Assembly (NCBI GenBank): GCA_030704615.1
Contig: CM060733.1
Span: forward strand, 45,384,001-45,448,000
DNA: 64,000 bases
From: Takakia lepidozioides
Lineage: Eukaryota; Plantae; Bryophyta
Direction of reading: 5' to 3'
Part shown: positions 5,878-54,035 of the stretch, piece after piece
How positions within the stretch are numbered: the stretch's first letter is position 1
How the letters are laid out: every line of letters begins with the position of its first letter
Program-made: the position numbers and the translations under genes
The notes under the pieces: model-generated
Database searches by the model: none
What the model was told of the DNA's origin: nothing
Seen by the model: the letters and a program-made list of their open reading frames with translations, nothing else

Positions 5878-10870
<4,993 letters not shown>

Positions 10871-15743: not shown

Positions 15744-15802
15744 TTCTTCTATCACCCTTACTTCTACAGAAAGAAAACCTCTCACACAGCATTAAGCGAT
15801 TG

Positions 15803-24899: not shown

Positions 24900-25967
24900 A
24901 GGAGCGTTTATCAACCTCGATATTGTCTCAACACTCTCCCTGTAATCCCCCTTCGAGACAGGATGGTTATGGAATCCAAAATGCACACAAGCTCTCGTCA
25001 TTGTATTCAAACGGTGGACAACATAGTACATTCTTGCTCCGTAGAGCGCCAAGCAGGATGGCACAAGTTTGCAGAATTTGCAGACGAAAGTGTTTGCCGG
25101 TGGAGGGGCAGTCCCAGGCTGAAATGGATTTTCCGCCAGACCCTCCCATTCGCTTTGATTATGAACACCAGACTGAAGAAAGTGTCTGCAATTCAAATTA
25201 TCACACCTAAGGTGTCCATTGCAAACTGTCCTCCTGAAAACAAGCTTGTCATCATTCTGAATATTGGATGTTTTTGTTCTGCACCACGGGTGCCCGTCGT
25301 GTTTCTTGTCTATTCCATGCATCATGATTGTTACACCTCCAACTCGCGGAGGAGGAGGCAGCTCGAATAGGATATCGCCATCAAAAGTCTCCGGCAAGAA
25401 CTGCACAGGCACCTGCTTCAAAGATTCCCAATCAATTCCCCGCAACTCACTTTTGAATCCAGCCATTCCTCCCATCGCCCGCAATTTTGGAATGACACTA
25501 CAAATCTCTTCTTCATCAGCTTCTGCAACCACAGTAGGAAGGACTGGATTTGGAATTTCACTTATGTCATCATCGGAAGAATCCGAAAGCTCAACGATTG
25601 GAGTGGAGGAAATCTGTTCTTTTTTCACCACCACTTCCCTCTTGTCTTCAACGACCGAAGCAGCAGTCCCGGGCGTCACATATGACCCAAGGGACTTTCG
25701 CCGAGGCTCTCCAAGTACTCTGTATCGACCAGGACGCACTCTCCACTGGCTGATATGAGCCGTCTCATCACGGTTTTGGAAAGAATATTTCACCAACTTC
25801 CCTTTCAGATCGTAAACCTCTTTCTCCAAAAAGATGGAGCCATTCTGCAGCTGAAAACGGGTAGCCAAGACATGTTCCAGAACAATTGCAAATCCATTGT
25901 CAAGGACTTCCTGGGAGAACGGCACTGGTTTGTCGTCTGAGAAGAACTCCGCTTCAGAGGAAGCCAT
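24900..25967 (-). pseudogene. 5' half of the MULE transposase, with a WRKY/GCM1-like zinc-finger region
   Basis: DGHPWCRTKTS..C.GHLRC...C...CKFC..C.ARMYY...ACVHFGFHNHPV. The ORF breaks after ETISRLI. Confidence 0.7.
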
Positions 25968-26821
25968 CTTCCTTCCTCGAGTATGTTTGTACCTTGCTAT
26001 CGCAGATCTAGTGTAAATCGGTTTACTGCTGTCTCCAGAACACAGTTGAAGAATGAGCAGAGAATATGGCGGAGGAAGCTCAGATAACGACTGTGCATAT
26101 TCTGTTATTCATTCCAGATATGCAGCCGTCCATTTTAATTACTTTTCTTGTGGGCCCAGTGGTCAGAGTATCCCTAGGGGCAGTGTCGGCAACTGTTAAA
26201 CCGTTAATCAGAACCTCATCAATAAACCCAATAACAAAGTCGACTTCCTGGAAGCATGCCACAGGATCTGAGAATGGGATTGCAGATTAAGTATATGTAT
26301 CTATATACTACTACCAATGATCATGCGCACCTGGAAAGTTCCAAATGTGAAACGAATGTGGGGTTTGGATAACAAGGATGACCGTGTATGATATTCCAAA
26401 ATTTGTCATCAAACTCTCGTTCATTTATATTTATTTGTTTAAGACTGCGCATCAATTTCTGGGATTCGCTGTTCTTTTTAAATATTGAACCCGTTATAAT
26501 AAAGAACACGTCGGTTTTTTTGGGCGGCACACGTCAGACATCCATAACTGAATACGAACAGCTGTACACCAATTGCTGGCATGTGCACTAATAAGGAAAC
26601 GACTATGTGTAACGGTCACGCGGGAGGGAATCCGATGCTTCTAGAGACATGCAAGAACACAGGCAATCCCGCAAGAAATCGGGAGTCACTGCGTTTTTCT
26701 ACTTTTCGCGCTTAGAGGGAGAGTGGTAGTCAAGCTGGAGAGGGTTCCTTCTAGAATACGAAAGAGAAGAAAGTCTCTTTATTTTACTTCCCTTAGAGAG
26801 AGACGCAAAGCAAGAGAGAAA

Positions 26822-29800
26822 ATGACGAGGCGTCGTTTGTTGGAGAACACAGGGCCAAGGCAGCAGGTGAACGCGGAGACTGATTCACAAGAGCAGACGG
26901 AGACTGAGGCAGCGGCTGCGACACAGTCGGCGATAAGAGTGCGCCAGCCTGTGGAGGCAGAGATGATTCGCAGGGACACTGAAGAAGGTGGAAGCACGCG
27001 GAACGCCGAACCTGAAGAAGGTCAAGAAACCCTTGCGCAGACAGAAACTCCAGCAGATGTGAGAGGGAAGAGGAAAGCTGCAGAAGGGGATCAAATTTCA
27101 AAACCTAAGAAGGTGCCAGTAAGTTTTATCATATAGTCTGTCTGATTGCCTTTCAAGGAGTCCTTCCTCTTCCATTCTTTAGCAGGAACTACTGAATCGC
27201 AAGCGTCGTTAACGCCATTCGATTCTCCTCATGAGATTTATGTACCTATGTGTTTGAAGAGAGAGTCTGCACTTACTATTCTCCCTAAACTACACTGAAT
27301 GTCGTTGCCCGCCAATCAGTTGCACATGTATGTCATTACACAACACCGATCCGGCAGGTTGTTATCTTTTGTGATTGTCGTTAACGTCGTTCGCTATCGC
27401 TCTCGCTTTTGTTTTGAATACGGCAGTCTCGGCTTTGCATGTGTAGATTGTGCTGAATTCTTTCACACCATTCATGGTGAGTTTCCTTGATACAGAGTGA
27501 TGGTCGTTACCGCCATTCACTATTTGCAAATCACTTAGTCAGAACTGAATGGCATCGTGCAGAAAACTGTGAGGTCGAAGCCTACAGGATCAGAGGGGAA
27601 AGGATCTGGAGATGGGGACGAGTCCGCAAAAAGCTCAGAGAATACAGATGAAGCAGATGAATCCGAAGTGCACTACCTTGACAAGGTGAAAGAACTCATG
27701 TCATTCCAGAAGGTAAACTCTCAGGAGGTTATAAGGGACATGCTCGTATCTGGAGGGCGTCTGGACATACCTCTGTGCCGGATGATATCAATGCCTATTG
27801 TGCGTCCACCTCTTTCCCATGACATAACAAAATTGGAGAGTGATTTTGTGCATGGATATAGACTTGGTGCACAAGTTTTTTATGTGTCACTGACGGATAT
27901 AAATGGGAAAAGCACATTAGTTTCTCCAGAGATCAGTGATAACTGGGATGAGTGCTGGAAAGATGCAAATGAGGAGTTCGAGCTGGGCCTCATGATGGGA
28001 AAGAACACCCAGCAATTCTGCAACCACATGTTCTACGTCTGGGACGGCAACCACCGATTGCTGGCATGGATGGGATACATTCAGAAACACCATTCGAAAG
28101 ACAAAGACAAGCATGTTGCTGTGGAGGCAATGGTTTTGGATCCAGGAAACGACATCGCTAGGCTTCTTACAGCTATGCACGACGTGAACAAGTAAGTCAT
28201 CCAGGAGATTTCATTCCCTCTGTAGTGTCTTGTTAATCCTCAAAAAACAGTGTTAAGGAATGCAATGTTTCCAATGTTTTTGCAGATCGACAGAGAAATC
28301 GCATGTGACAACAAGCTTGGTTCACACACTATTCCGAATTCAGAGGATTGGTCTGATGAAGCTGGATGATTTTCGGACAGTACTACCACCCAATATCATC
28401 AAGAAGTGCGAAACAGGAAGAGCTGCAGGCACTTGGTATTCTTTGACACGAGAGGCGTTTCTGGAATACATGTATGCGGTAAGCCCGAGTCTGTAATCTG
28501 TTTACTTTTCGAATACATATTTGTAGTCCCTTCGGAGCTAATCACTACTTGAATGAATGCAGCAAGAACTGGCAGAGGCAGCTGAGAAGGGAAAATCCGA
28601 ATATTACCGCACTACACCAGAGGAACTAAGGACATCAAAGGGTGTGGAAGCTGCAATAAAGAAGGAGTTTGAGATGCGAAGAACCAAATTGATGTCAGCC
28701 TTCGGAAAGCAGCTTAGAATAGTAGATCCTGACGACATTCACTTCTATGTCTGTGTCATTTCTACACGATTATTTGCATTCACCTGGATTAGGATGTATT
28801 TACAGTGTCATGGAATGGAATGTTCTGAATGGCGTTGACGACATTCATATCTGGAGCAGTAGTGTGGTCCTGAAAGGTCCTTGGAGCAGTTGTCAGAGCC
28901 ATTTCAATCTATGTTTTATTCTTTCTGTTCTACTTGCATCTTACTCACTGAGCGCTTTTGTGGGTTGGGATTTATCTCCTTTTTTCAGGTACACGAAATA
29001 TGTGCTTATGGAAGGAAATCACCTGAGCGGAATTCCCGACTATCTTGACATGTGGTCGGACCCTGCAAACGATCCAACCATGTATACTGCAGGGATATTG
29101 AAGGACTGGAGTCCTTCTCACTTCAGAGACTATGGGTGGTACCTTGACTGCCCACCTGAGCACACGACCTTTCAAGAACAGCATATGAAATACTTGAACA
29201 ATAACGCTGAGATGCTGGCGCCTTTGACTGACGAAGAGTATCAACGAAACATAGCAACCTTGGCTGCCAAGGAGCCTGATGCTCAGGGAACGCCGCAGAA
29301 GGGAAAGAAGGCGGGCCGCAAACCAAAAGACAAGGCTGTTGATGTCATAGCCATCTCACCAGCAAAGCCAAAGGACAAAGACAAGTCCAAAGAGAAGGAA
29401 AAGGACAAGGGGAAGGAGAATGAAAAGGAGATGGAGAGTGGGCAGGACTTTAGTGCTGGAAGATATACCCGCACTCTTCAGTGCGTGTTCGATGCCAAGC
29501 CACACCCTTCCCGTTCTGATTCAGCAGGAGAGATGAAAATTGTTAATGAGGGTTGGCTTTCGATGATGCAGAGTCGAAAGAGAGGATACACTGGGGTGCC
29601 ATCCCCTACCTGGGACAATATAATCTCATTCCTCAATCTGGTGAGAATTCCAGTTTCTTTCCTTTTTCTCTGAAAGTTTCGTTGGCAGTATTTCAGTCTC
29701 GTTCTTTGAAAACATTCTTGCCATCGTTCTTATAAAAAACATGTCTGTTGCAGGTGAGCACAGGTCCCACCTTCGTGTGCGGTGTGCAGAAAACTTATGC

Positions 29801-30900
29801 AGCCGACATTGTCATTCTCGACATCCCGGATGGCCAGGCTGTGCCAGAAGTTCTTCCAAAGGGCAAGACGCCAGGCTGGAACAAATTCGAGGACAACTAC
29901 TGGAGTTGGGTGTTCGGGTTCTGTAACAATTTCCTCTCTGATGCAGGGACACTTCTGCTTTTTCAGTCATGTGACAATGATAGTCGTCGGGCATTGGCAT
30001 CATACCTCAAGTCTTCAGGGTTTGAAGTTTTGCGCACATGGAATTGTGTGAACAGCCTCTACCTTGTGAAAGGGGGTTTCCCTGGTCAGCTGGTATGCCG
30101 TCTCCCTTCTGCTTGTGCTTTGATCATGAGTTTCAATTTTCTCTGCAGCTCCACTCTAGTAGAATGTTTTATGATCGACACCGATCATCAACGATTCATG
30201 ATTTTTTTGTGTCAGAGTTCTGAATAGCCTATGTACACACTTCCACTATAGATTGTGTTTACCACACTAACCTGCTATCTTTGCCAGACGAGGATGTTCG
30301 AGGCGATCTGCCTGCGGAGGATTCGCACATCAAAGACACCATCCTCCATCCACAGCTTTGAGATTTCTGACCAGGGTTGTTTCGTCAACCCCCCCTATGA
30401 GCCCCATGTCGATGACATTTTGTACAACTTCATGCACTCCAGTCAGACTCTGAAGAGACCAGATGGCACTCCCTGGAGAGGTGCAAAGGAAAAGTCACCA
30501 GCATTCATGCAAATACTGCTGGAGTCATGCAGCCACCGCTCTGCACGGGTGGTCGATCTTTCTGTGTCCACAGGTTCGTTTTTTCCCTTCCGAATTGGTT
30601 TCCTTTCAACAGTTTCATCTGCTTAAATCCCCCCCTCCAAACTGTTCATGTTCTCCTGTCTGGTGCAGGAGCAACTTACCACGCATGCAAGGCAGGCGGA
30701 AGAAGCCTTTTTGGCATGGAGGGTGATTCTGACCTCTACAACACCGTGCTCCTCCCCCTTTTGTCTGGCTCCACTTTAGGCACACAGACTGATCGGATTC
30801 AAATTCGAAATGATGACGATCCCGAAGATAAGCAGGTCGACAACGACTTTTCATGTGAGTAAGTGCTAAACCCTCTTTGGGAGTCATACTCAATTTCTCG
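26822..30900 (+). CDS. Multi-exon ParB/Sulfiredoxin-like domain + beta-class N6A/N4C DNA methyltransferase-like protein (TE cargo, possibly damaged)
   Basis: Exons at about ...-28191, 28286-28478, 28563-~28793, 28989-29640, 29754-30092, 30288-30573 and 30669-~30855, phase-consistent where checked. ParB motif VWDGNHRLLAW (DGNHR at 28043-28057). MTase: DIVILDIPDG (DIPD at 29820-29831), FLSDAG, W, EKSPAFMQILLESCS..ARVVDLSVSTGATYHAC..GRSLFGMEGD..LY. The 5' and 3' exon limits are uncertain, and one donor near 28793 looks mutated. Confidence 0.7.
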
Positions 30901-31319
30901 ATAACATCAAAGTTACAGTAATAACTTTTTCAGGCTGTCTTTCAGGAAAGGCAGCGGTGGATCTTCAGGAGATACAGTCATTTCTGGCGAGTCTGTTTTC
31001 GACAGCCCCCTTTCCAATTTTCTGCTCCCTGTTTATGCCGAAGCAATGGCACTTCACGCGGCCGAGTCCCTATCCCCTGACTTTTTAGTGGCCAGCCGTA
31101 GGTGTATCCAGTGTGGATCCGGTGTTCTAAAATACTTAGACTTAGATGCAGAGGAAGAGGGGATACATTGTACTGACTCTGAGTCAGACTGAACTGTATT
31201 CTTTTAATATTCATTTTCATATTATCTGGAAAACGTTGAATCCCCTTCCTCCACCGTAGTTGTTCCTTTAGAACAAATAATAATCACAGAATCAACTTTC
31301 GTTTAAATTGCTATATGTA

Positions 31320-31680
31320 TGAATCCATCTCACAAACCTTCCTGACTCTTCTCATATCCATTGTGCATTCATCTACACTGTATTCATGCGTGCTCCATTC
31401 ATGAAAGCTTCATTTGTACAACATCCATTGTACATTCATCATCTGTACTCTTTAATCCACCCCACAAACCTTCCACACTCATTTCATATACTTTGTGCAT
31501 TCGTCAAAAGATTTGGTCATGCATCTTCCTGTCATGAATTTTTGTCATTGCTCAACATCCATTATACATTCATCCATTTTACTCTTATCCATCCGTCATT
31601 CATCCATCTACATACATTTTTCACACTCATCCATCTGTTTATCATCCAACTGTACATTCATCCATCCTTTATTCAATGCC
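31320..31680. repeat. Degenerate CATC/CATT-rich low-complexity tract in the MULE subterminal region
   Basis: Recurrent CATTCATCCAT-like words. Confidence 0.6.
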
Positions 31681-31900
31681 TTTTATTATGTCGTCCAGCT
31701 TGTTTCCGCGGTAAAGGATGCCAATCCGCGGGAATACACTCCACTTCTTTCTGGGCGCGTGGTGACTCGGCCTTCACGTGTGATGACGTGGACTGAGCCC
31801 CGTGACGTGGCATTTGCGCAAGGTGACGTGGCGTGAGCGCAGTTGCGCTCACGCGCTCACGTGACCAGGCTCACGCCGAGGCATCCCTGTTAACAAAGAG

Positions 31901-34900
31901 ATGTTGGGAAGAGTCAATGCTAATAAGTTGAAGGGGTACAGTGGTATCCATGACAAACCATTGCAGCATGATTTGCATGTTGAAAAGCAAAAGCAGTCAC
32001 AGGGTGCACCAGTGTTACCAAAGGAGTATGGAGCACTTGACGCTAGGCCGAGCATATATGACCAGGGCGGGCAGAACAGGTGCGACACAACCTATCACAG
32101 CCCATCAAGGCGCGACACAGCCTATCACAGCACATCAAGGCGCGACACAGTCTATCACAGCCCATCAAGGCACAACACAACCTATCACAGCCCATCAATG
32201 CGCGACACAGCCTATTACAACCCATCAAGGCGCGACACAGCCTATCATAGCCCATTATGGCGCGACACAGAATATCACAACCTACCACAGCGTGTCACAG
32301 CCTATCACAACTTACCACAGTGTATCACAACCTATCACGGCGTACCACAGTATGACACAGCCTGTCACAGCTTAACACAGCCTACTAGGGTTACACCATC
32401 CATAGAATCAGTGACAGGTGGACGCAGGATAACTTCAGGAAAATGGCCGGCGGAAGAAAGGACGGAAGCCAGTTTAGAAAGGGACACGTGGAAGTCAGGG
32501 CGCAACACACAGCTGAGAAGAAAGTGCAAGAACAAATGTCATCAAGAAAGAGGACAAGAATGGCCGTCAAAATACCTAATCAGCGCGTCAATTTGGATGA
32601 AAGGCGGGCCCATTAATGAATACGGAAAAGGGGCAACAGAACAAACGGCAAGTACAGAAAAGCGAAATTCTTGTCACATGTGTTATCCTAGTGGACAGTC
32701 CAGTAGGGAAAGTCCACTAAAGAAAATTAAATCTAAAATCCAGTCACAGCGCTTACAGCCAATAGAAAGCCAGAGAAGGGATCAAGAAATTGGAGGGAAA
32801 TTAAGCGCAAGAGTCGGCGTCGTTCTAAGTAACGAGCGTCTCGACGGAACAAACCATCAATGCGATAGCTTGGAAGCTATGGAGGAACTAACTGACTATA
32901 CGCTCGCAATATTACTTACGCAGTGGCATAGGGACAAAAGAATAGAATGGATCTTTTCTCTTGATCGATGCTCGCAAGCCCCGCAGGCTTACAAGAAATT
33001 ACCCATAGCTTTTTGTGGCAACCATATGTTTATGCTTTGTGCACTACAGGCATTTCTTCAATTGTTACAACCAAAACATTTCTGTGGGTCTAGAATGAAG
33101 AGAGTGAGAGGAATGGAGGAAATCAGGGTGAAGAGCACCATAATCCTGCAGAAACAAACGATTGCTACTCCACAGGCGGTGAAGTTACTGAAAGAGCTGC
33201 GATTGGAAGGATTGCAAAGCAAAGACTGGACATTGCACCATAGACAGTACATGTTACAATTCTTGCAAAACTTTGAGCCAATGACAGGAGCAACCACGGT
33301 GAAGGGAGTTGAATTAGTAATTACTCCCCTATACCTACAGCAATTGTTTCGATTGCCAGCAGGTCAAGTGCATGTGGAGGAACACAGGGCAAGACTGCAA
33401 ATAGGGGACTTATTCCAAGAAGGAAGTTTCTTTAAAACTCAGGGTTATGCTTGTACCAAGGCCGTGTACCCAGGGCTAAGGGAGGTAGGCCAGGTATTGA
33501 ACGTTTTGTTTGCCATGAAACAAAACCAACAATATTTGAGCAGATCATTCACAGAAAAAATACTCAAAGCCCTGAGAGGACAAGAGGTAGAATGGGCAGA
33601 CATAATGTACAACGCACTGGTAGAGGAGATGAAAAGATTACAGGGTACTGCCGCAAAGTCTCCTATCATAGTGTCTGGCCCAATCATTGCTCAAATAATT
33701 CTTGATTCTGGCATACTTGATGCGCAAGAAAGAAAGGAGATGAGAGTGTTTGAGCCAGAAACCACTGCAATGGAAGACCAAGGCTCTTCACACAGTGAGG
33801 ATGGACTGGCAGGGCAACCCAAGACTAAGAGGCAGAGACGGGGAAAGACTGTAGTGGCGGATCCACTGGCTTCACGGATTCCGCTTGATAATGTTTCCCA
33901 AGCTCATGTGCAGGAAGGGGCACAGCAGCACAGAGAGCTGCTATTACTGGAAGCAGGACCTTCAGAGAGGGAAGAGGAAGTTACTTCAGTATCACAGCCA
34001 TCACAGCCAGATGATCGGCTTGTCACAAAGTTACCACAAGTTGTCCATGCAGTTCAACCAGAAATAATTGATTTAGAAAAAGAAGAATTAGATATTCCAA
34101 CTACAGAACAGGTGGTGGCAGAAATTGAGAAGGGGGACCTTCTCTATGAATATTCTAGTATGGTCAAGGACACAGTGATTCCGGAGGTGCAACGGTTGTC
34201 CAGGGCAAACCCTACGGCACATATAATACACACACCTGTGACGGAGGTACCACAGGTAGAATGCCAAGACACTGCAGCACCAGTGACGAATGAAGTGGTT
34301 CAGGAAGAAAATCTGGTGGGGCAATGGCCTGAATGGTTCGTAAGGCATCACACTGTTGAGGATCAGGGAGAACAGCAGCAAGCTCACCAAAATGACCCTC
34401 AACGGGCTATGCTTATGGGTTTCATAAGCAGGACACTGAATTTGTTGGGTACTTATGTCAAATCCCATGTTCCCACTACTCAATTGGCAGCTTTGAGGGA
34501 GGAACTCAGGAAAGAGTTTGAGGCTCGACTTGCCACAGAGTGTGCAAACAAGGTCGATGAAGAGGTCACTCTCAAAATGCAGCAAGACTTGGAGAGTACA
34601 GAAGCGGCTTTGCAATTGGCCAAGGAACAATTGATTGAGGCAGGCCTCGCACAAGACCACTTGCACGAAGCACATAAGCAACAGCTGTACCAAATGCAGG
34701 TGAAGCATGAAAGCAAGTTGCAAGAAGTGAATGCACTACATATGGAGTTGCAGACAGTGCATGATAGGATGGCCATACAATGTGCTACACTCACAACTAT
34801 GCTTGACCAATCTACAAAAGAAATAAACAGTCAAGCGGAAAAATGTACGAAGGCAGAGGAAGAGAATGTTGAGCAAATGAAACTCATTGTCGATATGAAG

Positions 34901-39419: not shown

Positions 39420-42400
39420 TGTTAGAGGACTGTCGGGGACTTAGACATTTATACGGGATCTGTAGGGTACCCTTAATTTTTGCACAGACTGAGACCAAAA
39501 GGAGCCTTAGGGGTGACAGCAGCGCACTGTAGAGGGGGGTTACACAGCCCGTCACAGTCGTCACAAACAAGCCAACACAAGCCACACAGCCCTCACAGTC
39601 GACACACAGCCGACACAGCCGACCAGCAGTCACAGCCCCGACACAGCCAAACACAGTCGCACGCCAGTCACCACAGCCCGTCACAGTTTCCACAGCCAGT
39701 CACTAGCTTGACACAGCTGTCACGATCATAGGGAACGAAGAGTAGGACAGGGAACGACTGTGGGACAAACACCTACGAAGGAACGAAGTGTGTGGGAACA
39801 CACCGTACGAAGGGACAGTTTAGTTCACAGACACACGGTTTAGTGAGGGAACGGTTTTAGAACCGCGGATACGGAAGATAAAGGGAGAAACGGGGAATGA
39901 AGGACCCCATTCAGAGAGGACTTCTTGGTGATTAGAGGAGAGGGGATCGGGCAGAGATGAAGAACGGAAGTGAATATAGGAGATGAGGAGTAGATGTTGA
40001 TATAGCAAACAGGGCTGTAATGATAATTGTAGATAGATTAGAGACCAATGGCTTCGGCCTGATACCTTCTAAATCATAATCGGATCTTTTACGATACAAA
40101 CACACTGTGTAGAGAGATCTGAGTGAAGCTTTGGAATGAATGGATGAGTTGATGGAATCCCATAGATTGATAAGCAAACTGATACTTAATTATAATGGTA
40201 GATAGTTAACATGAATACCAAAGGGAAACACATAGGAAACACCCCCATGAATACACTAGCTGTAGGTCATGACTGATTGTTCTGCGCGGGCTGAGTACTT
40301 AGAGATTTCCAACTCTTCAATCTTGGAGTTTCCGCCTCGAATAGCGAAGGGATGGGTGAGTAAAGCCGCGCGACATTTGGCGACCATACTGGGGACTGGG
40401 ACATGAACAACCAGATGTGACAGGCATCTGGTGGGATCATGGTGGTTTGACCATTAAAGAATTTGAAGTGAATCAAATTCCCTGTGGAACGAAGGAAGAA
40501 AGATTGTCCAAACAATTCTTTCAAAGGTTCTTGGAATTGCCAGACGGTTGTAAAGAAAATATTCTTAAACGAGTGCATGATGCTGATCCAGAATGGGGTC
40601 TGGAGAAAGGAGTGATAAAGATTTATCAGGTAGCCTGTAGAGGAAGAGCACGTTGGTTACCAACATTGGTTTATGTGATAGCATTGCTATCCATTAAACG
40701 AGTAGAGTTTGAAGGCTGGGAAGAAAGAAAGGTGAATGTTTATACTCATATGCATGAAGAGCTTGTACTGGTAAAGAATTGGATTCCAAAGGATATTTTG
40801 TGGATCAAACTCACACCAAGAACAGCTTTTCAGACTTGTTTGCCATATGGTTATATGGTAACGGAGACTTCAAGTATAGCCAGGGTGCATTGAAGCTTGA
40901 AAGAAACCCAGGCATATACGAGAGATATTACAGAAGAGAGTTTTGGTTATTGCCACATTAAAAGAAATGAAAGACATGGGACATGAGTGATGAAAGAGAA
41001 GCTAGACGACAGAGATATTCAGCAAAAAGAGAAAGCTATCTGAAAGCTAATTATCCATATCTTTGGGAGAGAGGAATAGACATAGGGGAATCATCTGGAC
41101 CTCTCACACCATCAAGATCAAAGAGTGCATCACTATACCGGAAGAACTAGAGTTGGATGCCACTCCTTCTGTTTCTTTGCAAGAAAGATTAAGGGAATTG
41201 GTACAGGGAAGAAGATCAATCACGAGGTGAAAGATCTGAGGTACATCCTTGGATAAAAGACTTGACAGAAATCTTTGATAAGAGTTGGCATGGAACACCA
41301 AAAGCAGGAACTCCAGTTTCTGAAGCAGAAGGTGAAGAAGGAGAAGAGGATGTGGCAGAGCCAACGGAGAGTTCAGACTCTCCAACACCATTACAGTTGA
41401 GTTACATGAGTGAAGAAGAAACCCAAGGGCAGAACTTGGAGGATGAAAACAGAGAGAAGAAATTAGAAGAGGAAGAATATGAAGAAGTAGACCCAACAGC
41501 TGAGGTTGAGACTACAACCAGGACATCCCAACCCGTTGGACCTGGATCAAGTGGAGCACTTGGATCACAGGCCAACGAAGGTGTCGGCTCAGGGGGATCA
41601 GGCGGGCTGCCTGGATCTGGCTCTGGGGGGACAGGGAGTGTGGGAAGTAGTGCAACTGAAGCTGGGAATACTGTGAATATCGTGGGGCCAGAAGCAGGGA
41701 GTGCTCAAGGGCCACCACTTGGTGGAAGATCCACCACAAAAACAACAGGTCCAGAAGGACCAGCACCAGCAAGGGTGCCAGCACCTGTCAGTGGGCAGAA
41801 GGTAGGGCCACAGATGGCGTTACAACCAACACGGGCAAAACCACCCTTTCCAATATATTCAGGAAAAGGGGATCCCGATGTACACATTAGCCAATTTGAG
41901 CACATGTGTATAGTGAACAATGATGCCAAGATGAGACTGTTTCCTTGTTCACTTATCAAGAAAGCAAGTGAATGGTATGCAAGATTTCCTGATAATCATT
42001 TCCTAACCTGGAATGGCTTGAATACAGCATTTTGAAATAGGTTCAGGACAAGTAAAACTGAGGATGAAGTGTATGGAAGTTTACAACAGCTGAAGCAGAA
42101 GAAGCATGAAACTGTTGAAGAGTATATGGAGAAGATGGAATTGATGATGAAAAAGCTGGCTGCAGTACCAGCGCCCGTTTACAGAAGACTTGGTTTGTGA
42201 GTGGACTAAGACCAGAGTTGCAAAAGAAAGTGGATATGTTACCCCATAATACAGTGGAGGAGGCATTTGAAACTGCGAACAGAATTGAGCAATTGGGAAT
42301 GCTCAGGAGAGAGAAAAAAGAAGATGAGGACTCTGAGGATGAGTCAGATGAAGAAGAAGAGCAAGAACTAAAAGGAAAGAGTAAGAGAAAGGAGAAGTTG

Positions 42401-45400
42401 AAGAGGGATAACTATGAAAAAAATTGGAAGAAATCTTGAAGAAGTATGCCACAGAGGCTGCAACACATTGGAGGAAGGGTGTATGGTGTGCAAAGTGCCA
42501 GAATGAAGGCCATACCACCACAGAATGCCACATGAAGGAGAAACACTGTACTATCTGTAAAATGGATAACCATTCTACTGAGAATTGTTACTACAACAGA
42601 AGGACAGCTGCAAGAGAACCTAGGCAAGTAAGGGTGCATCAGGTGCAGCCCCAGCCAAGAAGAAACAATGATCAGGACCACTATGGTAGGTCTGGTGGTT
42701 ATAACAATGGCATGGAAGGGAGAGGTAATTCAAGAGGGAATTACCAAGGAAATTCCAGAGGCAACTATCAGGGTAATCCAAGGGGGAATTACCAGCCGGG
42801 AATCAGGATTATAGAAATAATCCAAGAACAGACCAAGGGCGAGGACCCAATGGTGAAGAGCTATGTTACTATTGTAATCAGCCAGGACATCGCAAGGCAG
42901 CCTGTTCATTCTGGATAAGACACCAGAATGAGATGAGAGCTCCTGTGAATGAGGCCCAGTGGTGGCAGCTCACATGGTTAGGCCATGTGTTGTACCAGAA
43001 GTAAGTACAATGATAGTAACAAGAAGTAAAGCCAAACTAATACCTCCAGTAGAAGAGGAAGAAGATGAGACTGGAAGTGGCAATGATATGCCTGAAGATG
43101 AAGAGACTTGGAAAGATGAGAAGGAACTGCACAAGGAAGTGGCAGATACTATAAGGGAAATGCAAAAGAGTACTGATATTCCTGTGGCAGATTCCTCTGA
43201 TTCGGATGGAGAAAAAGAAGGGAGTGAGGAAGAAAGGAAAAAAGAAGATGCAGACATGCAAAGTAATGAAGAGACTTTGGCTGAAGTAATATGTCAGACC
43301 AAAGCAGAAATTACCATTGGACAGCTATTAGCTGTGGCACCTTATTGTAGGCACAGGCTGTATCAAGCAATCAATCGAATTGCCCAAGAGACAGGAAACA
43401 CAGACCTGAACAGCAAGGTGACCAGTTATAATGTGAAGCCGGAAGGGCGAGAACCAGTCATGGACTTTGATGATTCTATGCCAGTAATCCAATTGAGAAT
43501 TGGAAGCACAGAACTAACTGATGTACTGATAGATGGTGGTTCTGGAGTAAATATCATGACAGACCAATTAAGGAAGAAGCTTGGTCTAAGTAACATGAAA
43601 CCAGCCCCATTTACAGTAACAATGGCAGATCAAAGAAGTGTACAGCCATTGGGATTAATAAGAGGAGTTAAGATACAGATACAGAAAATGATCTTTATGA
43701 TCACAGTAACTGTATTAAAAATGGATGAAGTCATGGAGGCTTACTCCTTATTATTGGGACGTCCGTGGCTGAAACAGGCCAGGGTATTCCATGACTGGAA
43801 TTCTCAGTTACTAACCGTGCATAATGGGATACACGAGATACAAATTACCACAAAGAAATCTAGTAGATTACCTGCTACAAGAAGACCTCGAGGAGTCAGA
43901 GAGTATGACTGGAGAGGAGGACTGGATGAGGAGCAGGAAGCTACCCTATTTGCTGCACACCCAGAGTGGGAGCAGGTTGCAGAGATGCGGCTGGAAAGCC
44001 TAAGTTGTTTGAGAGGTATCTGCTGTGGTGTAGTGACAGCAACACCAACTGAAGAGGAAACCAGCATTTACCCATCACATTTCTATGAAGAAAGAGAAGG
44101 AGAAATAGAAATCCTAGAAGAACCAGCCACTGTGAGCTTACAGGATGAAGTGGTGACTGGTTGGACAATCACAGCTGATGATGAGCAGGTGAGAGAAGTA
44201 AATGTGGGAACTAAAGAGGAACCGAGGATGGTGAAAGTAGGAGCTGATTTGGAGCCGGAATTCTTCGAAGAAGCTAAAAGCTTGTTCATCAAATACAGAG
44301 ATGTATTTGCTTGGAGCTATGAGGATCTAAAAGGGATACCACCTGAAGTCTGTCAGCATAAGATTGAACTGGAACCAGGGTCAGTACCAATCAAGCAGGC
44401 GAGGTATAGAATGAATCCCAACTACGCACAGAAGGTTGGAGAAGAGATAAAGAAGTTGGCTGAGGCTAAGTTTATATACCCAATAGAGTATACAACTTGG
44501 TTGTCACCCATTGTTATAGTTCCCAAGAAGAATGGCAAACTAAGAGTATGTGTGAACTATAAGAAGCTGAATGCTTGTACGAAGAAAGATCCTTTCCCTT
44601 TGCCATTCACAGAAGCAGTATTAGACACTGTGGCAGGCCATGAGATGTACTCATTCATGGATGGCTTCAGTGGTTATAATCAAGTGCAAGTGGCAGAAGA
44701 AGACCAAGGGAAAACAGCTTTCATCACAGACTGGGGGCTTATGCATACAAAGTCATGCCCTTTGGACTTTGTAATGCACCAGCGACCTTTCAGAGAGTGA
44801 TAAGTGAATCTTTTCATGAGTATCTGGATGATTTCATGCAGGTATTCTTGGATGATTTCAGTGTGTACAGCTCTAAGAGTGAGCACTTGCATAAATTGGA
44901 GTTATGTTTGGCCAGATGCAGGATGAGAGGTCTGGGCCTGAATCCAGAGAAGTGTACTTTCTGTGTGAACTCAGGGGTGCTTCTGGGACACATTGTGTGT
45001 AAGAAGGGACTCCTTGTGGATCCCAAAGACAGAGTCCATTAAAGCCTCTCCACCACCAGTGAATGTTAAAAGTCTACGGAGATTCCTTGGGCAAACCAGT
45101 TATTACAGAAGATTTGTCAAAAGGTATGCACAAATAGCAGCACCATTGAGCAAACTACTGAAGAAAGATGCAGTGTGTTTGCCTGGACAGCTGAATGTCA
45201 ACAGCGTTTGAGGAACTTACACTGTCAGTAACAACTACACCTGTGCTGATTAACCCTCACTGGCATGTAGTATTCCATGTTCACTGCGATGCATCAGGAG
45301 AAGCGTTGGGAGCGGTGTTAGCCCAGAATGTTACAGGGAATATAGATTCACCTGTGTACTATGCTAGCCGGTTGATGAACAGTGCTGAGAGGAACTATAG

Positions 45401-48400
45401 CACAACGGAAAGAGAAGCATTGGCAATGATTTATGCAGTCAAGAAATTCAGGCATTACCTATTGGGAAGAAAGTTTATGTTTTATGTGGATCACCAGGCT
45501 CTGATATATCTGGTGAACAAACCTTTGATAAGTGGAAGGATAGCGAGGTGGTTAATAATCTTGCATGAGTTTGAGTTCGAGGTTATTTACAAGCCTGGCC
45601 GTTTGCATCTTGTGGCAGATCATTTGTCACGACTAACAACAGGAGAGGCCGCCACAGGAGTGGACGATCAGTTACCTGATGCGAGTTTATTTGTAATGGA
45701 GGTGCAAGGAAGTGCAGATGAATGGTTAGATTGGCAGTGGCCAATCAGATACTACCTTGCTCATGGTCAGTGCCCACCTAGTTATGGTAAGGAGCAGAGG
45801 AAGAGAATCGCTATCAAAGCTTTACCTTATACTATGGTAGGAAGCAGAATGTATAAGTTAGGACCTGATGGAGTACTAAAACGATGCTTGTACCACCATG
45901 AAGTAAATAAAGTTTTGGCGGAAGTTCATAAAGGAGTGGCTGGAGGTCATTTTGGAGAAAGAACTACCAGTAGAAAGATACTACTTACTCGCAGGATACT
46001 GGTGGCCTACTTTGTTCAAAGATGTACACGAGTATTGTCAGAAGTGTGATGAATGTCAGAGGCTAGGACCTTTGCAGAGATCTGGAAGGATGGCCTACAA
46101 TGCCTACGGAACCATTTCAGAAATGGGGACTAGACTTTGTTGGACCAATTAACCCACCATCCAAGAATACACGAACAGGTACATAATTACAGCCACCTGA
46201 TTATTACTAACAAAGTGGGTGGAAGCTAAAGCTTTGAGGGACAACACAGCCAAAGTCCACAGCAAGTTCCTGTACGAGAACATACTTACACGATTTGGCT
46301 GTCCCTTAGATTTATCAGTGATCAAGGAAGTCACTTCATGAATGAGACCATTGAATTGTTGACTAAATAGTTCATGATTGTGCATAGGAAGAGTACAACA
46401 TATTACCCACAGGGTAATGGACAGGCAGAGGCTACCAACAAAATACTATGTACTGTCTTGGCTAAGATAGTCAATGCAAATAGAACGGATTGGGATACAA
46501 AGCTGCTGACAGCTTTGTGGTCATACAGGACTTCATATAAAGTCACCACTAAGTATACACCATTCCAATTAGTTTATGGTATGGAAGCCTTACTTCCAGT
46601 GGAATTCCTGTTACCTACCATGAGAACGGAATGGGGAAAGAGAATAGAATTGCAAGATTCCATTAAGGTCAGGAAACATGAATTATACCATGTAGAAGAA
46701 GTACGTGCTGATGCAGCTGATAATATGACCAGAATTCAGATGAAGAGAAAGGAACAGTTTGATGAAGGCAAGTTAAAGACTTTTAAGACGGGGGATTTGG
46801 TTCTATGGTTGCAGAAGAAAGGAAAGATTAAAGCTTCTAAGCTTAAATCACCATGGAAAGGACCTTATGTCATACAAAAGATGTATGATAACAACACCGC
46901 CATGTTACAAACCATTAACAAAGAGATGCTGGGAAGAGTCAATGCTAATAAGTTGAAGGGGTACAGTGGTATCCATGACAAACCATTGCAACATGATTTG
47001 CATGTTGAAAAGCAAAAGCAGTCAGGGGCTGCGCCAGTGTTACCAACGGAGTATGGAGCACTTGTCGCTAGGCCGAGCATATATGACCAGGGCGGGCAGA
47101 ACAAGCGAGAAACAGCCTATCACAGCCCATCACGACGTGACACAGCCTATCACAGCCCATCACGATGTGACACAGCCTATCACAGCCCATCACGACGTGA
47201 CACAGCATATCACAGCCCAGCACGGAGCAATACAGCCTATCACAACCTACCACAGCGTGTCACAGCCTATCACAGCTTACCACAGTGCATCACAGCCTAT
47301 CACAACGTACCACAGTATGACACAGCCTGTCACAGCTCAAAACAGCCTACTAGGGTTACACAATCCATAGAATCAGTGACAGGTGGACGCAGGATAACTT
47401 GAGGGAAATGGCCGGCGAAAGAAAGGACGGAAACCAGTTTAAAAATGGACACGTGGAAGTCAGGGCGCGACACACAGCTGAGAAGGAAGTGTAAGAGCAG
47501 GTGTCATAAAGAAAGAGGACAAGAATGGCCGTCAAAATACCTAATCAGCGCGTCAAATTGGATGAATGGCGGGCCCATTAATGAATACAGAAAAGGGGCA
47601 ACAGAACAAACGACAAGTACAGAAAAGCGAAATTATTGTCACATGTGTAATCCTAGTGGATAGTCCAGCAGGGAAACTCCACTAAAGAAAATTAAATCTA
47701 AAATCCAGTCACAGCGGTTACAAGCCAGAGAAGGGATCAAGAAATTGGAGGGAAATTAGGCGCAAGAGTCGGCGTCGTTCTAAGTAACGGGCGTCGCGAA
47801 GGGACAAACCATCAATGCGATAGCTTTGAAGCTATGGAGGAACTATCAGACTATACGCTTGCAATACTACTTACGCAGTGGCATAGACACGAAAGGACAG
47901 AGCGGATCTTTTCTCTTAAGCGATGCTTGCAAGCCCCGCAGGCTTACAAGAAATTACCCATAGCTTTTTGTGGCAACCATACGTTTATGCTTTGTGCACT
48001 ACAGGCATTTCTGCAGTTGTTACAGCCAAAACATTTCTGTCGGTCTAAAATGAAGAGAGTGAGAGGAATGGAGGAAATCAGGGTGAAGAGCACCACAATT
48101 CTGTAGAAACAAACGATTGCTACCCCACAGGCGATACAGATACTGAAGGAGCTGAGATTACAAGGATTGCAAAGCATAGATTGGACATTGCACCAAAGAC
48201 AGTACATGTTACAATTCTTGCAGAACTTTGAGCCAAGGACAGGAGCAACAACGGTGAAGGGAGTTGAATTAGTAATTACTCCCCTATACCTCCAGCAATT
48301 GTTTCGATTGCCAGCAGGTCAGGTGCATGTGGAGGAGCACAGGGCAAGACTGCAAATAGGGGACTTATTCCAAGAAGGGAGTTTCTTTAAAACTCAGGGT

Positions 48401-48471
48401 TATGCTTGTACCAAGGCCGTGTACCCAGGGCTAAAGGAGGTAGGCCAGGTATTGAACGTTCTGTTTGCCAT
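39420..48471 (+). mobile_element. Gypsy copy A (non-chromovirus-like): LTR, 5' extra ORF, gag-PR-RT-RH-INT, start of 3' extension; frameshifted and 3'-truncated
   Basis: LTR TGTTAGAGG at 39420. Gag from 40983 with three CCHC knuckles, PR LIDGGS, RT MDGFSGYNQ/FLDD, RH HCDAS..EREALA..DHQAL, INT GHF..C..C/DFVG..SDQG..GQAE. Confidence 0.95.
40268..40960 (+). pseudogene. Extra ~230-aa ORF upstream of gag (copy A, frameshifted)
   Basis: Homologous ORFs occur at 59012-58318 (-) and 59945-60200 (+). No recognisable domain. Confidence 0.6.
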
Positions 48472-49276
48472 TGTCGTGCGCATACATATCGCTACACAAC
48501 TACATCGCTGTCCAAACCACACCACACATATATGCACAATAAAGTAGTCTAGCACAATCGCCCCCTAGCTGGTGGATAGGTCCCCTACCTCCAGATAGCT
48601 ACAAGATGTAATAGCCACAGCCGTACTAAGTCCTCTATCACTGTCTTTATCGAGCTCAAACTCTATCAACCAAGAGGCCGGGTACAAGAGTAGCCCCATC
48701 GTTAGTCGCCGTCTTGCAATCTATGAACTTGAGCCAAGATCTCGTGTGTTCAAGGTCTCCTAGTAGCTGGGCCTTGCATTTCTTGTTAGCCTCCCATGGT
48801 TGTATCCACTCCCACTATCCAATGCAATGTGGACATAACCAATCCCCATCCGGAACCATCTCAAGAGGTGGAGTTAAGCATCCCATATGCCAACCTCTAG
48901 AGCACCGATCACATACCAGCATGGTGGCTGCCCCTTTAGCAGACCCACACAACATGCACCTCAAACCTGCAGATACCACTGCCAAGTTTGGGTCAATCCT
49001 GCCATCGACATTCGGAAGGTGACATGGCGCACAATTACGCACATGGTCCTTCCAAGTGATGCCATCCCGACCCTCCAAGACCAAGACGCCTGAGGGCAAG
49101 ACCTCTCGAACCCTCAAAATAACACGTCCTGCAGTCACATCCAGGGTCGTAGGAGCAGTCTGCTGCAGATAGACATAGTCACCAGGGTTGAATCTCCGAA
49201 CCCCAGGACGATAGCCCCCACCACGTATGGTAGCATACCTCAACGTATCACGGTGTTGTGCAATGGCAAGGTTCTC
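48472..49276 (-). mobile_element. Gypsy 3' end: integrase tail + PHD finger, PPT and ~85-bp LTR, inserted in copy A
   Basis: NLAIAQHRDTLRY...F.PGDYVY...HVRNCAPC then the PHD CMLC..MLVCDRC..WHMGCL.PPL..VPDGDWLCPHC. PPT TAGGGGGCGAT. Segment 48472-48556 is bounded TG...CA. Confidence 0.85.
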
Positions 49277-51716
49277 GAACCCATCCGCAACAACATCTGC
49301 AATTGCTCTTGGCGCAAGCAAGTCCTTCTTGGAAAGCCATATTTTGAGTGAAGGAGATTCTGTGGGGACTAAACTTGACGGTGTAGCATTGGACCTGGTC
49401 ATGGATCATTTCTCCACTTTAAGTTCACCTAACATTCGGCATCAGATCAATGCATTGAGAATGGGCTCTGGGATCAGAGGCTACATAGACAATATTTTGG
49501 AATTGAAACGAGTGAGCAAGTACGATTACATCCAGGACAATGTATTCCCAGGTCAAGGTGCCATCAAAGTTTTTCTTTTCAAAATGTCGACTGTTGGGGA
49601 GGGCAGTGGGGTTAGCCTCGTGAAGAGGATGCAGAAGACTGGGGACTTGCAGAACTGTTTTCTTATGTTTGATCATGTGAAACGAGTGAAGGATTGGACG
49701 ACAATGGCTTGTCATGTCTACGATCCAGTGTACCAACGAGTTATGACAATTGCAGTTTGTGACATGCAATCCGAGGATACGGAATCCTAGAAGCTCATGT
49801 GGAATTCCCTGATACGTGTCATGGGCTGCCATGGGCTGCCATCTCCAAATTTCGCAGGTTTCATGGCGGATAGTGCTCAAGCAAATTTCAATGCTGTTCG
49901 TATTGTCTTCGGATCGGGCGACCCACAAGTGCCTATGCCAGGAAGAGAGCGTACATGTCTATTCCATTGGACACAATCTCTGGAAAAACATACAAAGTCG
50001 GACATCAAACCAGAGATGCAGACTCAGCACCGTAAATTGTGCAAAGAGTACAAAGATGCTAGAACAATGAAGGAGGCGGACACTTTGTTCCAGACAATTC
50101 GTGCCTGGTGGTTCTCTTCTGGAGCTGCATCACTTGAGAGTATGAGAGCATTGGAAGATTGGCTGGCGTTTTGGCACTTCCGGTATAGACAGTGGGGAGC
50201 AGCCATGACAATGGGACGAGGCTTCTATTTCATGCTTTATTCATACATTTGCTTTCCATATTTTTGACTCATTGCTTTCTTTATGTTGTTTTCTGTGCAC
50301 TATTCTGAAGTGTGGTTATCCTCTTTGCAGAACATGTCCATTGAGGAAATGGCGGACATGTCATCTTGCAATTTGGCAGAAACTGCGCACAATGCATGGT
50401 TGCAGCAGTCTGGGAAACGAGGTCGGGATTTGTATGTGGCAACAACAGATGATTTGATACGTGCCTTGCAACAACAAACCCGATACCGTGATTTCTTACG
50501 AGGTGGGGTTGGTGGCAAGGGTCCGGACAAATGGGAATTGATGTTGCGTGCTGCAAACAGATCTGGGGATCCAATCAAGATAGCACGGGCGGTGAGCATG
50601 TATGCCCAGGGAACGCCACTTGTTTCTAGAGTTCCACATCTTGAAGGGGAGGAGAGATTCGGCTCCTGTAAGAGGAAATTGAACACTCCACCTGGTTCGG
50701 ATTCAGATTCCCACAGGGCAGACCGTGATAACTTCTCGAAGCCTCGTGTTCCCCTGCATGACAGCTCCATGTCCGGAACCTCCATTGTGGAGGAACCTCC
50801 AACACGACGGCAAGCTCCAGCATCAAACCGTGCCACTGAAATGGTGCAGGAGAGAAACAACCCCCTTGATGTGCTTGAGTCCGCATGCCCCGACCACGTT
50901 TGGCACATAGAACGCACAAGTGTCGGGTCTCGTGTGAAATGTACAGCGATCAGGGCAACTAATTTCGAGAAGTGCACTTCATCTATATCCAGAGGTGGTG
51001 CCCGAACTCCTGCTCCGACTTTCACGGGCTTGATGCGTCCATACGGTCAACCAGAAGCCAAGAACCACAAGTTCTGGTTCTGCGCAGATGATTGTGCCAG
51101 ATGTGTGCATGGAACTGTGCGTCCTTCCGTAGTGATGAAGCTATCTCCTCCAACCGTTTGGCCCGTGAAGGTGGGAACACATCTCAGCTTTCAGGAGATT
51201 GAAATGCTGGAGGAGGCAGGTTTTTCCCTTGCGAGACAACCCCAACTCCATGCATGTGCTACTACTTCTGCGTCCTCCCGGGTCCCCCCGGCAAATCCTG
51301 ACTTGTGGCCAACCAAACGAGATGGAAAGCTCGTTCGGCGTTTCCCTCCAACCGCTGAACACTTTGGCAAAGTGAAGTCCACAAGAATGCTCCAAGCTCG
51401 TGTCGGAAGCACCACGGAAGTACCCGATCCAGGATATGGTCGGGTATTCACAATCATCACTTCCACATCTGCTGTTCATGACAGGACCTACGACATCACG
51501 GTTTCCAATTTCCCCAATTGCACATGTCTTGATTTTGTGAATATGCTATCAACCAGTTTGGGCAAGAGAGGTAAATTCATACCCTGCAAACATTTGTATT
51601 TCATATTTTTGAGGAGGATGGTTTGCGATCCCAAACGTGACAACTTCATTCACCAGGCCACTATGAGTTTCAACGAGGTCGATACTCTTTTGCAGCGGGA
51701 TACAACACATGGGTAG
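49277..51716 (+). pseudogene. 3' half of the MULE transposase (DDE + SWIM zinc finger)
   Basis: MFDHVKR (D), FMADSAQ (D), CLFHW (CxxH), NLAETAHN (E), and SWIM CTCLDF...CKHL. In-frame TAG at 49788-49790. Probable intron at about 50214-50330 with a GG instead of GT donor. Confidence 0.85.
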
Positions 51717-52315
51717 CATGAACTATGTAATGTGGTATGTGGATGACCATGATTTGAAATGTGTAATTCACATCAATTCGTCGGCTGTGCAATGATATGG
51801 CCTCCAACTATACAGAGTGAGGTCTGAGTGACAACTTTTAGGTAGTGCACATTTGTCATTGCACCGTTCGAAGTCTACATGTCTTACTGTCGCTATGCAC
51901 ACAATCATCTTTTGAAGATGATCATAACTCTCATTGTTATTTGAGGAGGGAGGAAGTCTTCTCGTGGCAGCCTTTATGGCGCACACTTTGTGAGGATATT
52001 TTGTCGTCTTCGTAATTGTAAAAGTGAAACAAGCATTTGTAATTGCACAATGTTGGATGCTGCAATTGTAGGCCTCAACGCTCGTCTTGATTCTATTTAG
52101 GCAAGATTCCCTGCATTAATTCCACGGTAATAGGACCATCCACGGTTATAGGCGGCGCATGTTAATGCTGACGTGGCAGTTGACGGACAGTGCCACGTCA
52201 TCATTTACCGCCACATCAGCATGCTGACATGACGCTCACGCCACGTCAGCGTGTGTGCAGGCTCACGCCACGTCAGCTGGCGTGAGCGTACGCTCACGCC
52301 ACGTCACTCCTGCGT
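49277..52315 (+). mobile_element. Right part of the Mutator-like element with subterminal CACGTCA/GCTCACGCC repeats
   Basis: Repeat-rich end at 52120-52315 resembles 31706-31889. Confidence 0.75.
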
Positions 52316-53998
52316 CAACTACATCTGTGCTGATTAACCCTCACTGGCATGTAGTATTCCATGTTCACTGTGATGCATCAGGAGAAGCGTTGGGAGCGGT
52401 GTTAGCCCAGAATGTTACAAGAAATATAGATTCACCTGTATGCTATGCTAGCAGGTTGATGAACAGTGCTGAAAGGAACTATAGCACAACAGAAGGAGAA
52501 GCATTGGCAATGATCTATGCAGTGAAGAAATTCAGGCATTACCTGTTGGGCAAGAAGTTTATGTTATATGTGGATCACCAGGCTCTGATATACCTGGTAA
52601 ACAAACCTCTGATAAGCGGAAGAATAGCAAGATGGTTGATAATCTTGCACGAGTTTGAGTTCGAGGTTGTTTACAAGCCTGGGAGACTGCATCTTGTGGC
52701 GGATCACTTGTCACGGTTATCAACAGGAGAACTAGCCACAGGAGTAGACGATCAATTACCTGATGCGAGTTTATTTGTAATGGACGTGCAAGGAAGTGCA
52801 GATGAATGGTTAGATTGGCAGTGGCCAATCACATACTACCTTGCTCATGGTCAGTGCTCACCAAGTTATGGAAAGGAGCAGAGAAAGAGAATTGCTATCA
52901 AGGCTCTACCTTAAACTATGGTAGGGAGCAGAATGTATAAGCTAGGACCAGATGGAGTGCTGAAACGATGCTTGTACCACCATGAAGTAAATAAAGTTTT
53001 GGAGGAAGTTCATAAAGGAGTGGCTGGAGGTCATTTTGGAGAAGAGACTACCAGTAGGAAGATACTACATGCAGGTTACTGGTGGCCTACTTTGTTCAAA
53101 GATGTACACAAGTATTGTCAGAGTTGTGATGAATGTCAGAGACTAGGACCTTTGTAAAGATCTGGGAAAATGTCTTTGCATCCTACAATGCCTACTAAAC
53201 CATTTCAGAAATGGGGACTAGACTTTGTTGGACCAATTAACCCACCAGCCAAGAATACACAGAACAGGTACATAATTACAACCACTGATTATACTACAAA
53301 GTGGGTGGAAGCTAAAGCTTTGAGGGACAACACAGCCAAGTCCACATCAAGGTTTCTGTATGAGAACATACTTACACGATTTGGCTGTCCCTTGGAATTT
53401 ATCAGTGATCAGGGAAGTCACTTCATAAATGAGACCATTGAATTGTTGACTGTAGAGTTCATGATTGTGCATAGGAAGAGTACAACATATTACCCACAGG
53501 GTAATGGGCAGGCAGAGGCTACCAACAAAATACTATGTACTATCTTGACTAAGATAGTCAATGCAAACAGAACGGATTGGGATACAAAGCTGCTGACAGC
53601 TTTGTGGTCATACAAGACTTCATATAAAGTCACCACTAAGTATACACCATTCCAATTAGTTTATGGTATGGAAGCTTTACTTCCAGTGGAATTCCTGTTA
53701 CCTACCATGAGAACGGAATGGGGAAAGAGAATGGAATTGCAAGATTCCATTAAGGTCAGGAAACATGAGTTATACCATGTGGAAGAAGTACGTGCTGATG
53801 CAGCTGATAATATGACAAGAATTCAGATGAAGAGAAAGGAACAGTTTGATGAAACTTTTAAGACGGGAGATTTGGTTCTATGGTTGCAGAAGAAAAGAAA
53901 GATTAAAGCTTCTAAGCTTAAATCACCATGGAAAGGACCTTATGTCATACAAAAGATGTATGATAACAACACCGCCATGTTACAAACCATTAACAAAG
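52316..53998 (+). mobile_element. Gypsy copy B, middle piece (RNase H + integrase), inverted
   Basis: Colinear with 45232-46923 of copy A. Resumes about 3 nt after the point where the RT piece stops (54036) and ends at the TSD TTAACAAAG. Confidence 0.9.
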
Positions 53999-54035
53999 CA
54001 ACGACGCAATGGCGTGAGCGTTGCACGTGAGCGCG
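53999..54035. repeat. Displaced outer TIR of the MULE element (CAACGACGCAATGGCGTGAGCGTTGCACGTGAGCGCG)
   Basis: Imperfect inverted match to the last ~38 nt before 31889, adjacent to the 9-bp TSD. Confidence 0.8.

Follow-up and report, generated by a model that had tools for sequence, protein, structure and literature searches.

Mutator-like elements (MULEs) make target-site duplications (TSDs) of 8–11 bp, typically 9 bp, and the 9-bp TSD is the hallmark of Mutator. The closest described systems are MuDR of maize, Jittery and the MULEs of Arabidopsis without terminal inverted repeats (TIRs); MuDR carries two genes that are transcribed in different directions, and non-TIR MULEs are known. Here, we analyze a 64-kb stretch of the genome of Takakia lepidozioides (contig CM060733.1, positions 45,384,001 to 45,448,000; hereafter, the window), which is a land-plant transposon nest. 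Three pieces scattered over the window appear to belong to a single MULE of about 10 kb, which was inserted into a Gypsy retrotransposon and later broken up by two rearrangements.

The window element resembles MuDR, Jittery and the Arabidopsis non-TIR MULEs in its 9-bp TSD and C-terminal SWIM finger, and it shares with Mutator-like elements a D...D...CxxH...E core, recognized by eye, and a Cys/His-rich N-terminal domain. As in MuDR, its two genes point in different directions. It differs from them in that its termini are very short and dissimilar (15 of 21 positions agree), yet each kind of terminus is kept in a relative with 33% identity in the N-terminal half of the transposase. Its second gene is a putative cargo gene with NPPY and DGNHR motifs, not mudrB.

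The locus as a whole also has known counterparts. As in other nested-transposon archaeology in plants, a host copy and an empty-site copy permit rebuilding at the level of single bases; unlike the usual case, two separate rearrangements both break inside one 10-kb element, and the larger of them is not reciprocal. Alternative transposition of Ac/Ds likewise leaves inversions adjacent to or inside a cut-and-paste element. It makes inversions and deletions whose breakpoints lie exactly at the transposon ends and makes a new TSD, whereas in the window one breakpoint lies 37 bp inside the element and another about 3 kb inside it, and there is no new duplication. A literature search on this MULE family and on SRR327433 found nothing relevant.

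Host retrotransposons and target site

All results are based on sequence analysis of the window, with the Gypsy A copy serving as the reference for Gypsy B (Table 1). Both host elements are Ty3/Gypsy long terminal repeat (LTR) retrotransposons, having LTRs, a polypurine tract and the order protease, reverse transcriptase (RT), RNase H and integrase. The LTR start, TGTTAGAGG..., is found at 39420, at 36691 and, on the minus strand, at 59888, with a purine tract ahead of the 3′ copy; the 5′ LTR start of Gypsy B at 59888 is an intact natural end. Pfam matched the protease, RT (RVT_1) and RNase H (RT_RNaseH) in Gypsy A. The Gypsy integrase-like sequence was recognized by eye only, and the open reading frame (ORF) of the integrase region (46374–47402) had no Pfam match.

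Self-BLASTN aligned Gypsy B to Gypsy A in three segments. B 59253→54036 (−) corresponds to A 40035–45228 with 94.7% identity, B 52316–53998 (+) to A 45232–46923 with 92.6% identity, and B 31890–33516 (+) to A 46915–48471 with 86–91% identity. The middle and 3′ pieces therefore overlap on Gypsy A, by exactly the 9 bp TTAACAAAG. This 9-mer occurs three times in the window, at 31890, 46915 and 53990, always on the plus strand. Gypsy A runs through it at 46915–46923 without interruption, and both flanks are continuous. In Gypsy B, the left flank and the 9-mer adjoin CAACGACGC... at 53999, and ...GGCATCCCTG adjoins the 9-mer and the right flank at 31890. The foreign DNA beside the two copies reads CAACGACGCAATGGCGTGAGC... 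from 53999 and ...GCTCACGCCGAGGCATCCCTG up to 31889. The original prediction had described the 9-mer as single in Gypsy A and duplicated beside both termini in Gypsy B, and the word search and the BLASTN overlap agree with it.

Table 1. Coordinates of the features discussed in the text; the cargo gene is putative.
Feature	Position	Strand	Remarks
MULE transposase-side terminus, 37 bp (CAACGACGCAATGGCGTGAGC...)	53999–54035	+	separated from the rest by the small inversion
MULE left arm	49278–52315	−	element orientation is the reverse complement; subterminal GACGTGGCGTGAGC repeats at 52150–52315
MULE right arm	24909–31889	+	N-terminal transposase half, cargo region, subterminal repeats; terminus ...GGCATCCCTG at 31869–31889
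TSD copy 1 (TTAACAAAG)	53990–53998	+	end of middle Gypsy B piece
TSD copy 2 (TTAACAAAG)	31890–31898	+	start of 3′ Gypsy B piece
Transposase, N-terminal Cys/His-rich half	25967→24909	−	within right arm
Transposase, C-terminal part	49278–51716	+	within left arm; DDE-like core, SWIM finger
GTT (reverse complement AAC)	24906–24908		same 3 nt at 49278–49280
Cargo gene region	about 26800–30900	+	divergent from transposase; NPPY at 30387; WDGNHRLL (DGNHR) motif
Gypsy A	39420–48471	+	reference copy; empty MULE site 46915–46923; own end truncated at 48471
Gypsy B 5′ piece	54036–59888	−	LTR start 59888; gag, protease and RT down to the equivalent of A 45228
Gypsy B middle piece	52316–53998	+	RNase H and integrase; equivalent of A 45232–46923
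Gypsy B 3′ piece	31890–36897	+	integrase end, 1583-aa extra ORF, polypurine tract, first ~207 bp of 3′ LTR
Other LTR-element fragment, 806 bp	48472–49277	−	integrase C-terminus and PHD finger; stop at 48815

Rebuilt element and its termini

For the BLAST searches, the three MULE pieces were abutted without adding letters, giving 37 + 3,038 + 6,981 = 10,056 bp; the Gypsy B pieces were judged from the BLAST coordinates. The presence of one MULE of about 10 kb, flanked by a 9-bp TSD inside Gypsy B, is strongly supported. Its termini, CAACGACGC... and CAGGGATGCC..., are short and unlike each other. The two terminal 21-mers agree at 15 of 21 positions, and the similarity can be aligned to about 38 nt with one indel, values that the original prediction had also given. 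The word GGCGTGAGC occurs seven times in the 64 kb, against 0.19 occurrences expected, and all seven lie within 31830–31877, 52234–52300 and 54011–54019, which are the three proposed ends. A longer word, GACGTGGC, marks both subterminal regions.

Transposase gene

The putative transposase gene lies in two halves on either side of a break. The minus-strand ORF 25967→24885 reaches ...ETISRLI at 24909, and the plus-strand reading from 49278 opens with NPSATTSAIAL. These halves are those of the original prediction, but the break, which had been placed at about 24900, is actually at 24908|24909. A word search gave 21 homologues of the N-terminal ORF, 11 of which cross the join: past the residues aligned to ...RLI, they continue for 4–11 amino acids (aa) and then read PSAT/PTAK...SAI..., a stretch that aligns to the second transposase half of the window. 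The best homologue, P0004, covers the next window ORF as well. BLASTN of the rebuilt element against its closest relative (Logan contigs L001 and L002) gave one high-scoring segment pair of 3,075 bp with 73.4% identity, which crosses the transposase join. The gap at the join is only 3 nt against L002, the window reading RLI-N-PSAT and L002 reading RLI-RQ-ELET. Because AAC is present on both sides (Table 1), the join carries a 3-nt microhomology and possibly involved no loss at all. The segment pair and the 11 protein homologues that span the join strongly support the earlier proposal that the two halves were once contiguous.

The transposase has an in-frame TAG stop at 49791, where L002 has CAA, and the window copy of the MULE is dead. 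A poorly aligned stretch at about 50240–50330 ends with TTGCAG, and its counterpart is the ORF break of L001; this gap in the transposase looks like a short intron.

Relatives in other genomes

In tblastx, L001 matches the rebuilt element colinearly over the cargo gene and on to the transposase end. The homologue P0005, which shares 33% identity with the window transposase in its N-terminal half, is carried by L003, a contig of the ENA assembly ERZ25073694. This contig holds an intact relative of 11,918 bp at 2397–14314, which is also colinear with the rebuild. The original prediction held that intact relatives should have both termini, and the L003 element does have both, the cargo-side terminus being CAGGATTGC... 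and the transposase-side one CAACGACGC. They occupy the same positions with respect to the genes, and the element stands between two copies of AGCTCGGTT, a 9-bp duplication. The cargo-side end reads CAGGATTGCTAGTTTGTGAGC in L003 and CAGGGATGCCTCGGCGTGAGC in the window, and the transposase-side end reads (A)CAACGACGCTAGTTTATGAGC in L003 and CAACGACGCAATGGCGTGAGC in the window. A second copy in ERZ25073694 (L004, 14035–14044) has the same transposase-side terminus next to a different flank, which fixes the boundary of the element on this side. The first 9 nt of this terminus are identical in the window, L003 and L004. On the evidence of L003 and L004, the family is characterized by the unlike termini, by their placement with respect to the genes and by the 9-bp duplication. 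The subterminal repeats of the L003 family are (A/G)ATGAGC instead of GGCGTGAGC, and TGAGC alone is common to both families.

Classification and cargo gene

The evidence on the class of the element is mixed and points to a divergent MULE. The 9-bp TSD is seen in the window by comparison with the empty site in Gypsy A, and likewise in L003. The inverted terminal sequences are short and imperfect (15/21, ~38 nt), and these ends are kept in L003 and L004; the window element has no long (>100 bp) TIRs such as those of MuDR. The motifs MFDHV, FMADSAQ, CLFH and SLEKH, read by eye, come in the order that the D-D-CxxH-E pattern of the superfamily would predict. The SWIM finger (PF04434) scores 21.2 bits in L001:7274–8614, against a Pfam cut-off of 19.6, and is below threshold in the window copy (13.5 bits, E 0.052). 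The nearest named ESM Atlas clusters all carry PF10551 MULE, with a top score of 0.95. In Pfam scans of the transposase ORFs, the homologues and the cargo ORFs, SWIM was the only match, and no MULE, FAR1, ParB or methyltransferase match was obtained in the window.

The N-terminal domain of the transposase, a candidate WRKY/GCM1-type zinc-finger DNA-binding domain that the original prediction had called GCM-like, has invariant Cys, His and Trp columns across 14 homologues, and it had no Pfam match. An AlphaFold model of this domain, made from the 14-sequence alignment, had a pLDDT (predicted local distance difference test) of 52.9, which was too poor for a fold search. On the side that matches the cargo gene, the relative L005:1888–2337 (−) shows a weak match to PF01555 N6_N4_Mtase. 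Overall, the element appears to be a new, divergent member of the Mutator superfamily.

Two rearrangements

The smaller rearrangement involves the segment 52316–54035 (1,720 bp), which contains the RNase H–integrase piece of Gypsy B, a TSD copy and the 37-bp MULE terminus. When this segment is turned back, Gypsy B is continuous again at the equivalent of A 45228/45232, where three bases of A (TAA) have no counterpart in B, and the MULE terminus comes to lie beside a subterminal region with the same repeat motif. At this join, the rebuilt MULE reads ...GAGCGCG (position 37), followed by ACGCAGGAG.... No duplication and no flanking inverted repeat were found at this inversion. The segment is a clean, reciprocal two-break inversion. 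Homology or loss of 0–3 nt at junctions is expected for non-homologous or microhomology-mediated end joining, and we infer that the small inversion was repaired by end joining.

The larger rearrangement is different. Undoing 24909–49277 (24,369 bp) restores the transposase junction, with the 3-nt AAC microhomology at its breakpoint in the MULE. The far junction would set AT-rich non-coding DNA against the middle of an integrase. On its right side lies the 806-bp fragment of another LTR element, which reads FENLAIAQHRD...GDYVYL and then a fused PHD finger (Pfam 3.4e-11) within 48815–49279 (−). On its left side, up to 24908, lies AT-rich DNA with many stops in all plus-strand frames, which showed no similarity to this fragment or to the Gypsy A pol and integrase-region ORFs at E up to 1. 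Because the far junction is not restored, a simple inversion is insufficient: the data call for something further, be it a deletion at this junction, a third break or the 806-bp fragment having been captured as filler, and misassembly is less likely.

The original prediction, in which undoing two inversions would restore a continuous Gypsy B with one insert of ~10.1 kb, holds in several of its parts. Gypsy B does stop at 54036 (−) and resume at 52316 (+), with 3 nt of A absent by BLASTN; the small inversion is reciprocal; and a single insert (10,056 bp) is recovered. The large inversion, however, restores only its MULE junction and not the reciprocal one, and Gypsy B is not fully continuous, since its 3′ LTR is severed at ~36897. 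Two other origins were considered and rejected. Insertion of an LTR element into the transposase does not agree with the junction at 49277, which falls in the middle of an integrase rather than at the end of an LTR. Recombination between inverted repeats does not agree with self-BLASTN, in which no inverted homology flanks either segment.

Further mid-element breaks are found nearby, namely the 3′ LTR of Gypsy B (~36897), an RT (~37860), Gypsy A at 48471 and a fold-back junction (~60200). The fold-back lies to the right of the 5′ LTR of Gypsy B, within 58758–60833, where 59889–60200 (+, equivalent to A 40213–40522) adjoins 60199–60833 (−, equivalent to A 40115→39436). The Gypsy-type RT severed at ~37860 belongs to 37848–39304 (−), in which the cytosine-5 methyltransferase-like motifs ILENVP, RPRLWWTN and ERERAMGF lie directly upstream of the RT start.

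Proposed history and alternatives

We consider the following history likely as a whole. An autonomous MULE of about 10.06 kb would have inserted into the integrase end of Gypsy B, making the 9-bp duplication TTAACAAAG and bringing with it the transposase, a divergently transcribed cargo gene and two short, unlike termini. The element, which has a CAG-to-TAG-type stop in the transposase, would then have decayed, and the locus would later have been broken by two end-joining rearrangements without a common breakpoint, probably in the order given here. The first would be the reciprocal 1,720-bp inversion, with breaks 37 bp inside the MULE and at the RT/RNase H border of Gypsy B. The second, an event of inversion type, would span 24,369 bp. 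One of its breaks, in the transposase gene, would have been joined over the 3-nt microhomology, and the other now adjoins the 806-bp integrase/PHD fragment; the far junction would have lost or gained DNA.

Several observations weigh against this history. For the large event, joining 24908 to the reverse complement of 49277 restores nothing at the other junction. The partner of the integrase/PHD fragment was absent both left of 24908 and in the whole window in searches by self-BLASTN, self-tblastx and tblastn at E up to 1, and a repeat search found no repeat or transposon terminus that ends at 24908. The similarity between the two MULE termini ends exactly at the small-inversion breakpoint (MULE position 37|38), so that a loss of bases is possible there. 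Over 215 bp, the two LTRs of Gypsy B are only 88% identical, which does not exceed the similarity between A and B; LTR identity alone does not show that the 5′ and 3′ pieces are parts of one element. With regard to the class of the element, PF10551 (MULE), whose lack of a score sets the window MULE apart from known Mutator-like elements, had no match at E up to 5 in the relatives or in ORFs N, C2 and C3 of the window; ORF C1, with the first aspartate motif, was scanned at E up to 0.01 only and likewise had no match.

Some of these points would suit a different origin of the larger event. The element model may hold while this event was a rearrangement of three or more breaks, in the form of excision and inverted re-insertion of 49278–59888 or of local shattering or template switching, and such an event could also have made the other mid-element breaks nearby. 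That only one of the two expected inversion junctions is restorable, that the window has several further mid-element breaks and that the MULE break carries a 3-nt microhomology are consistent with it. However, the excised block would need a break exactly at 59888, the natural end of the 5′ LTR of Gypsy B, and an inversion with a later deletion accounts for the same data by ordinary events; we regard the three-break origin as unlikely. The repeat density of the region raises the question of whether one or both rearrangements are assembly errors. Misjoins arise in shared repeats, whereas the junctions here join unrelated sequences with 0–3 nt of homology, neither segment is flanked by inverted repeats, and the small inversion is reciprocal except for 3 nt, which makes such errors quite improbable. 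The 88% similarity of the 5′ and 3′ LTR fragments of Gypsy B would also be compatible with pieces derived from two copies, in opposite orientation, of a duplicated Gypsy B::MULE unit, each truncated independently. Such truncations must have hit the same transposase nucleotide (with a 3-nt overlap) and the same RT/RNase H nucleotides of Gypsy, and self-BLASTN found no duplicated MULE or Gypsy B sequence in the window. This scenario has hardly any probability in our view.

The breaks might also be non-random, if members of this MULE family were inversion hot spots, possibly via aberrant action of the transposase at terminus-like words. Two observations point in this direction: the Gypsy breakpoint of the small inversion adjoins CAACTAC, compared with CAACGAC in the terminus, and the MULE breakpoint of the same inversion lies 3 nt from CAGGAGTGACGTGGCGTGAGC. 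The latter word, at 52292–52312 (−), is the best match in the window to the 21-mer of the cargo-side terminus (16/21) and sits 40 nt inside the transposase-side end. Nine of its 16 matches come from the repeated subterminal word, and little weight is therefore placed on it. We find the hot-spot idea very doubtful. In the history favored above, the rearrangements are ordinary products of end joining, and the rebuild is ordinary transposon archaeology.

Other elements in the window

The Gypsy family has an open frame of 1583 aa after the integrase (31901–36652, +), which contains an array of 30-bp (10-aa) repeats and long coiled-coil-like stretches and had no Pfam match. The cut of Gypsy A at 48471 falls inside the equivalent of this ORF. 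The ends that Gypsy A and Gypsy B lack were not found in the window by self-BLASTN, self-tblastx or tblastn at E up to 1.

A complete-looking Copia element with gag, protease, integrase and RVT_2 lies at 11124–16208 (−), and its LTRs of ~390 bp are 92.7% alike. Two units with inverted ends that resemble miniature inverted-repeat transposable elements lie at 17418–18430 and 20111–22100. The inverted ends extend over 86 nt with 95% identity in the former and over about 140–190 nt with 73–83% identity in the latter, which is made of 99-bp tandem units.

Significance for the family

The locus provides a base-resolved example of a transposon nest that was scrambled after insertion. Both halves of the transposase, the cargo gene and the two dissimilar termini, now scattered, can be assigned to one element, whose pieces, without the rebuild, would pass in annotation as three unrelated fragments. 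The main value lies in the family: its boundaries and gene order are now fixed, with two termini conserved across genomes and a 9-bp TSD. With the boundaries defined, the cargo gene, a question of its own, can be approached on firm ground.

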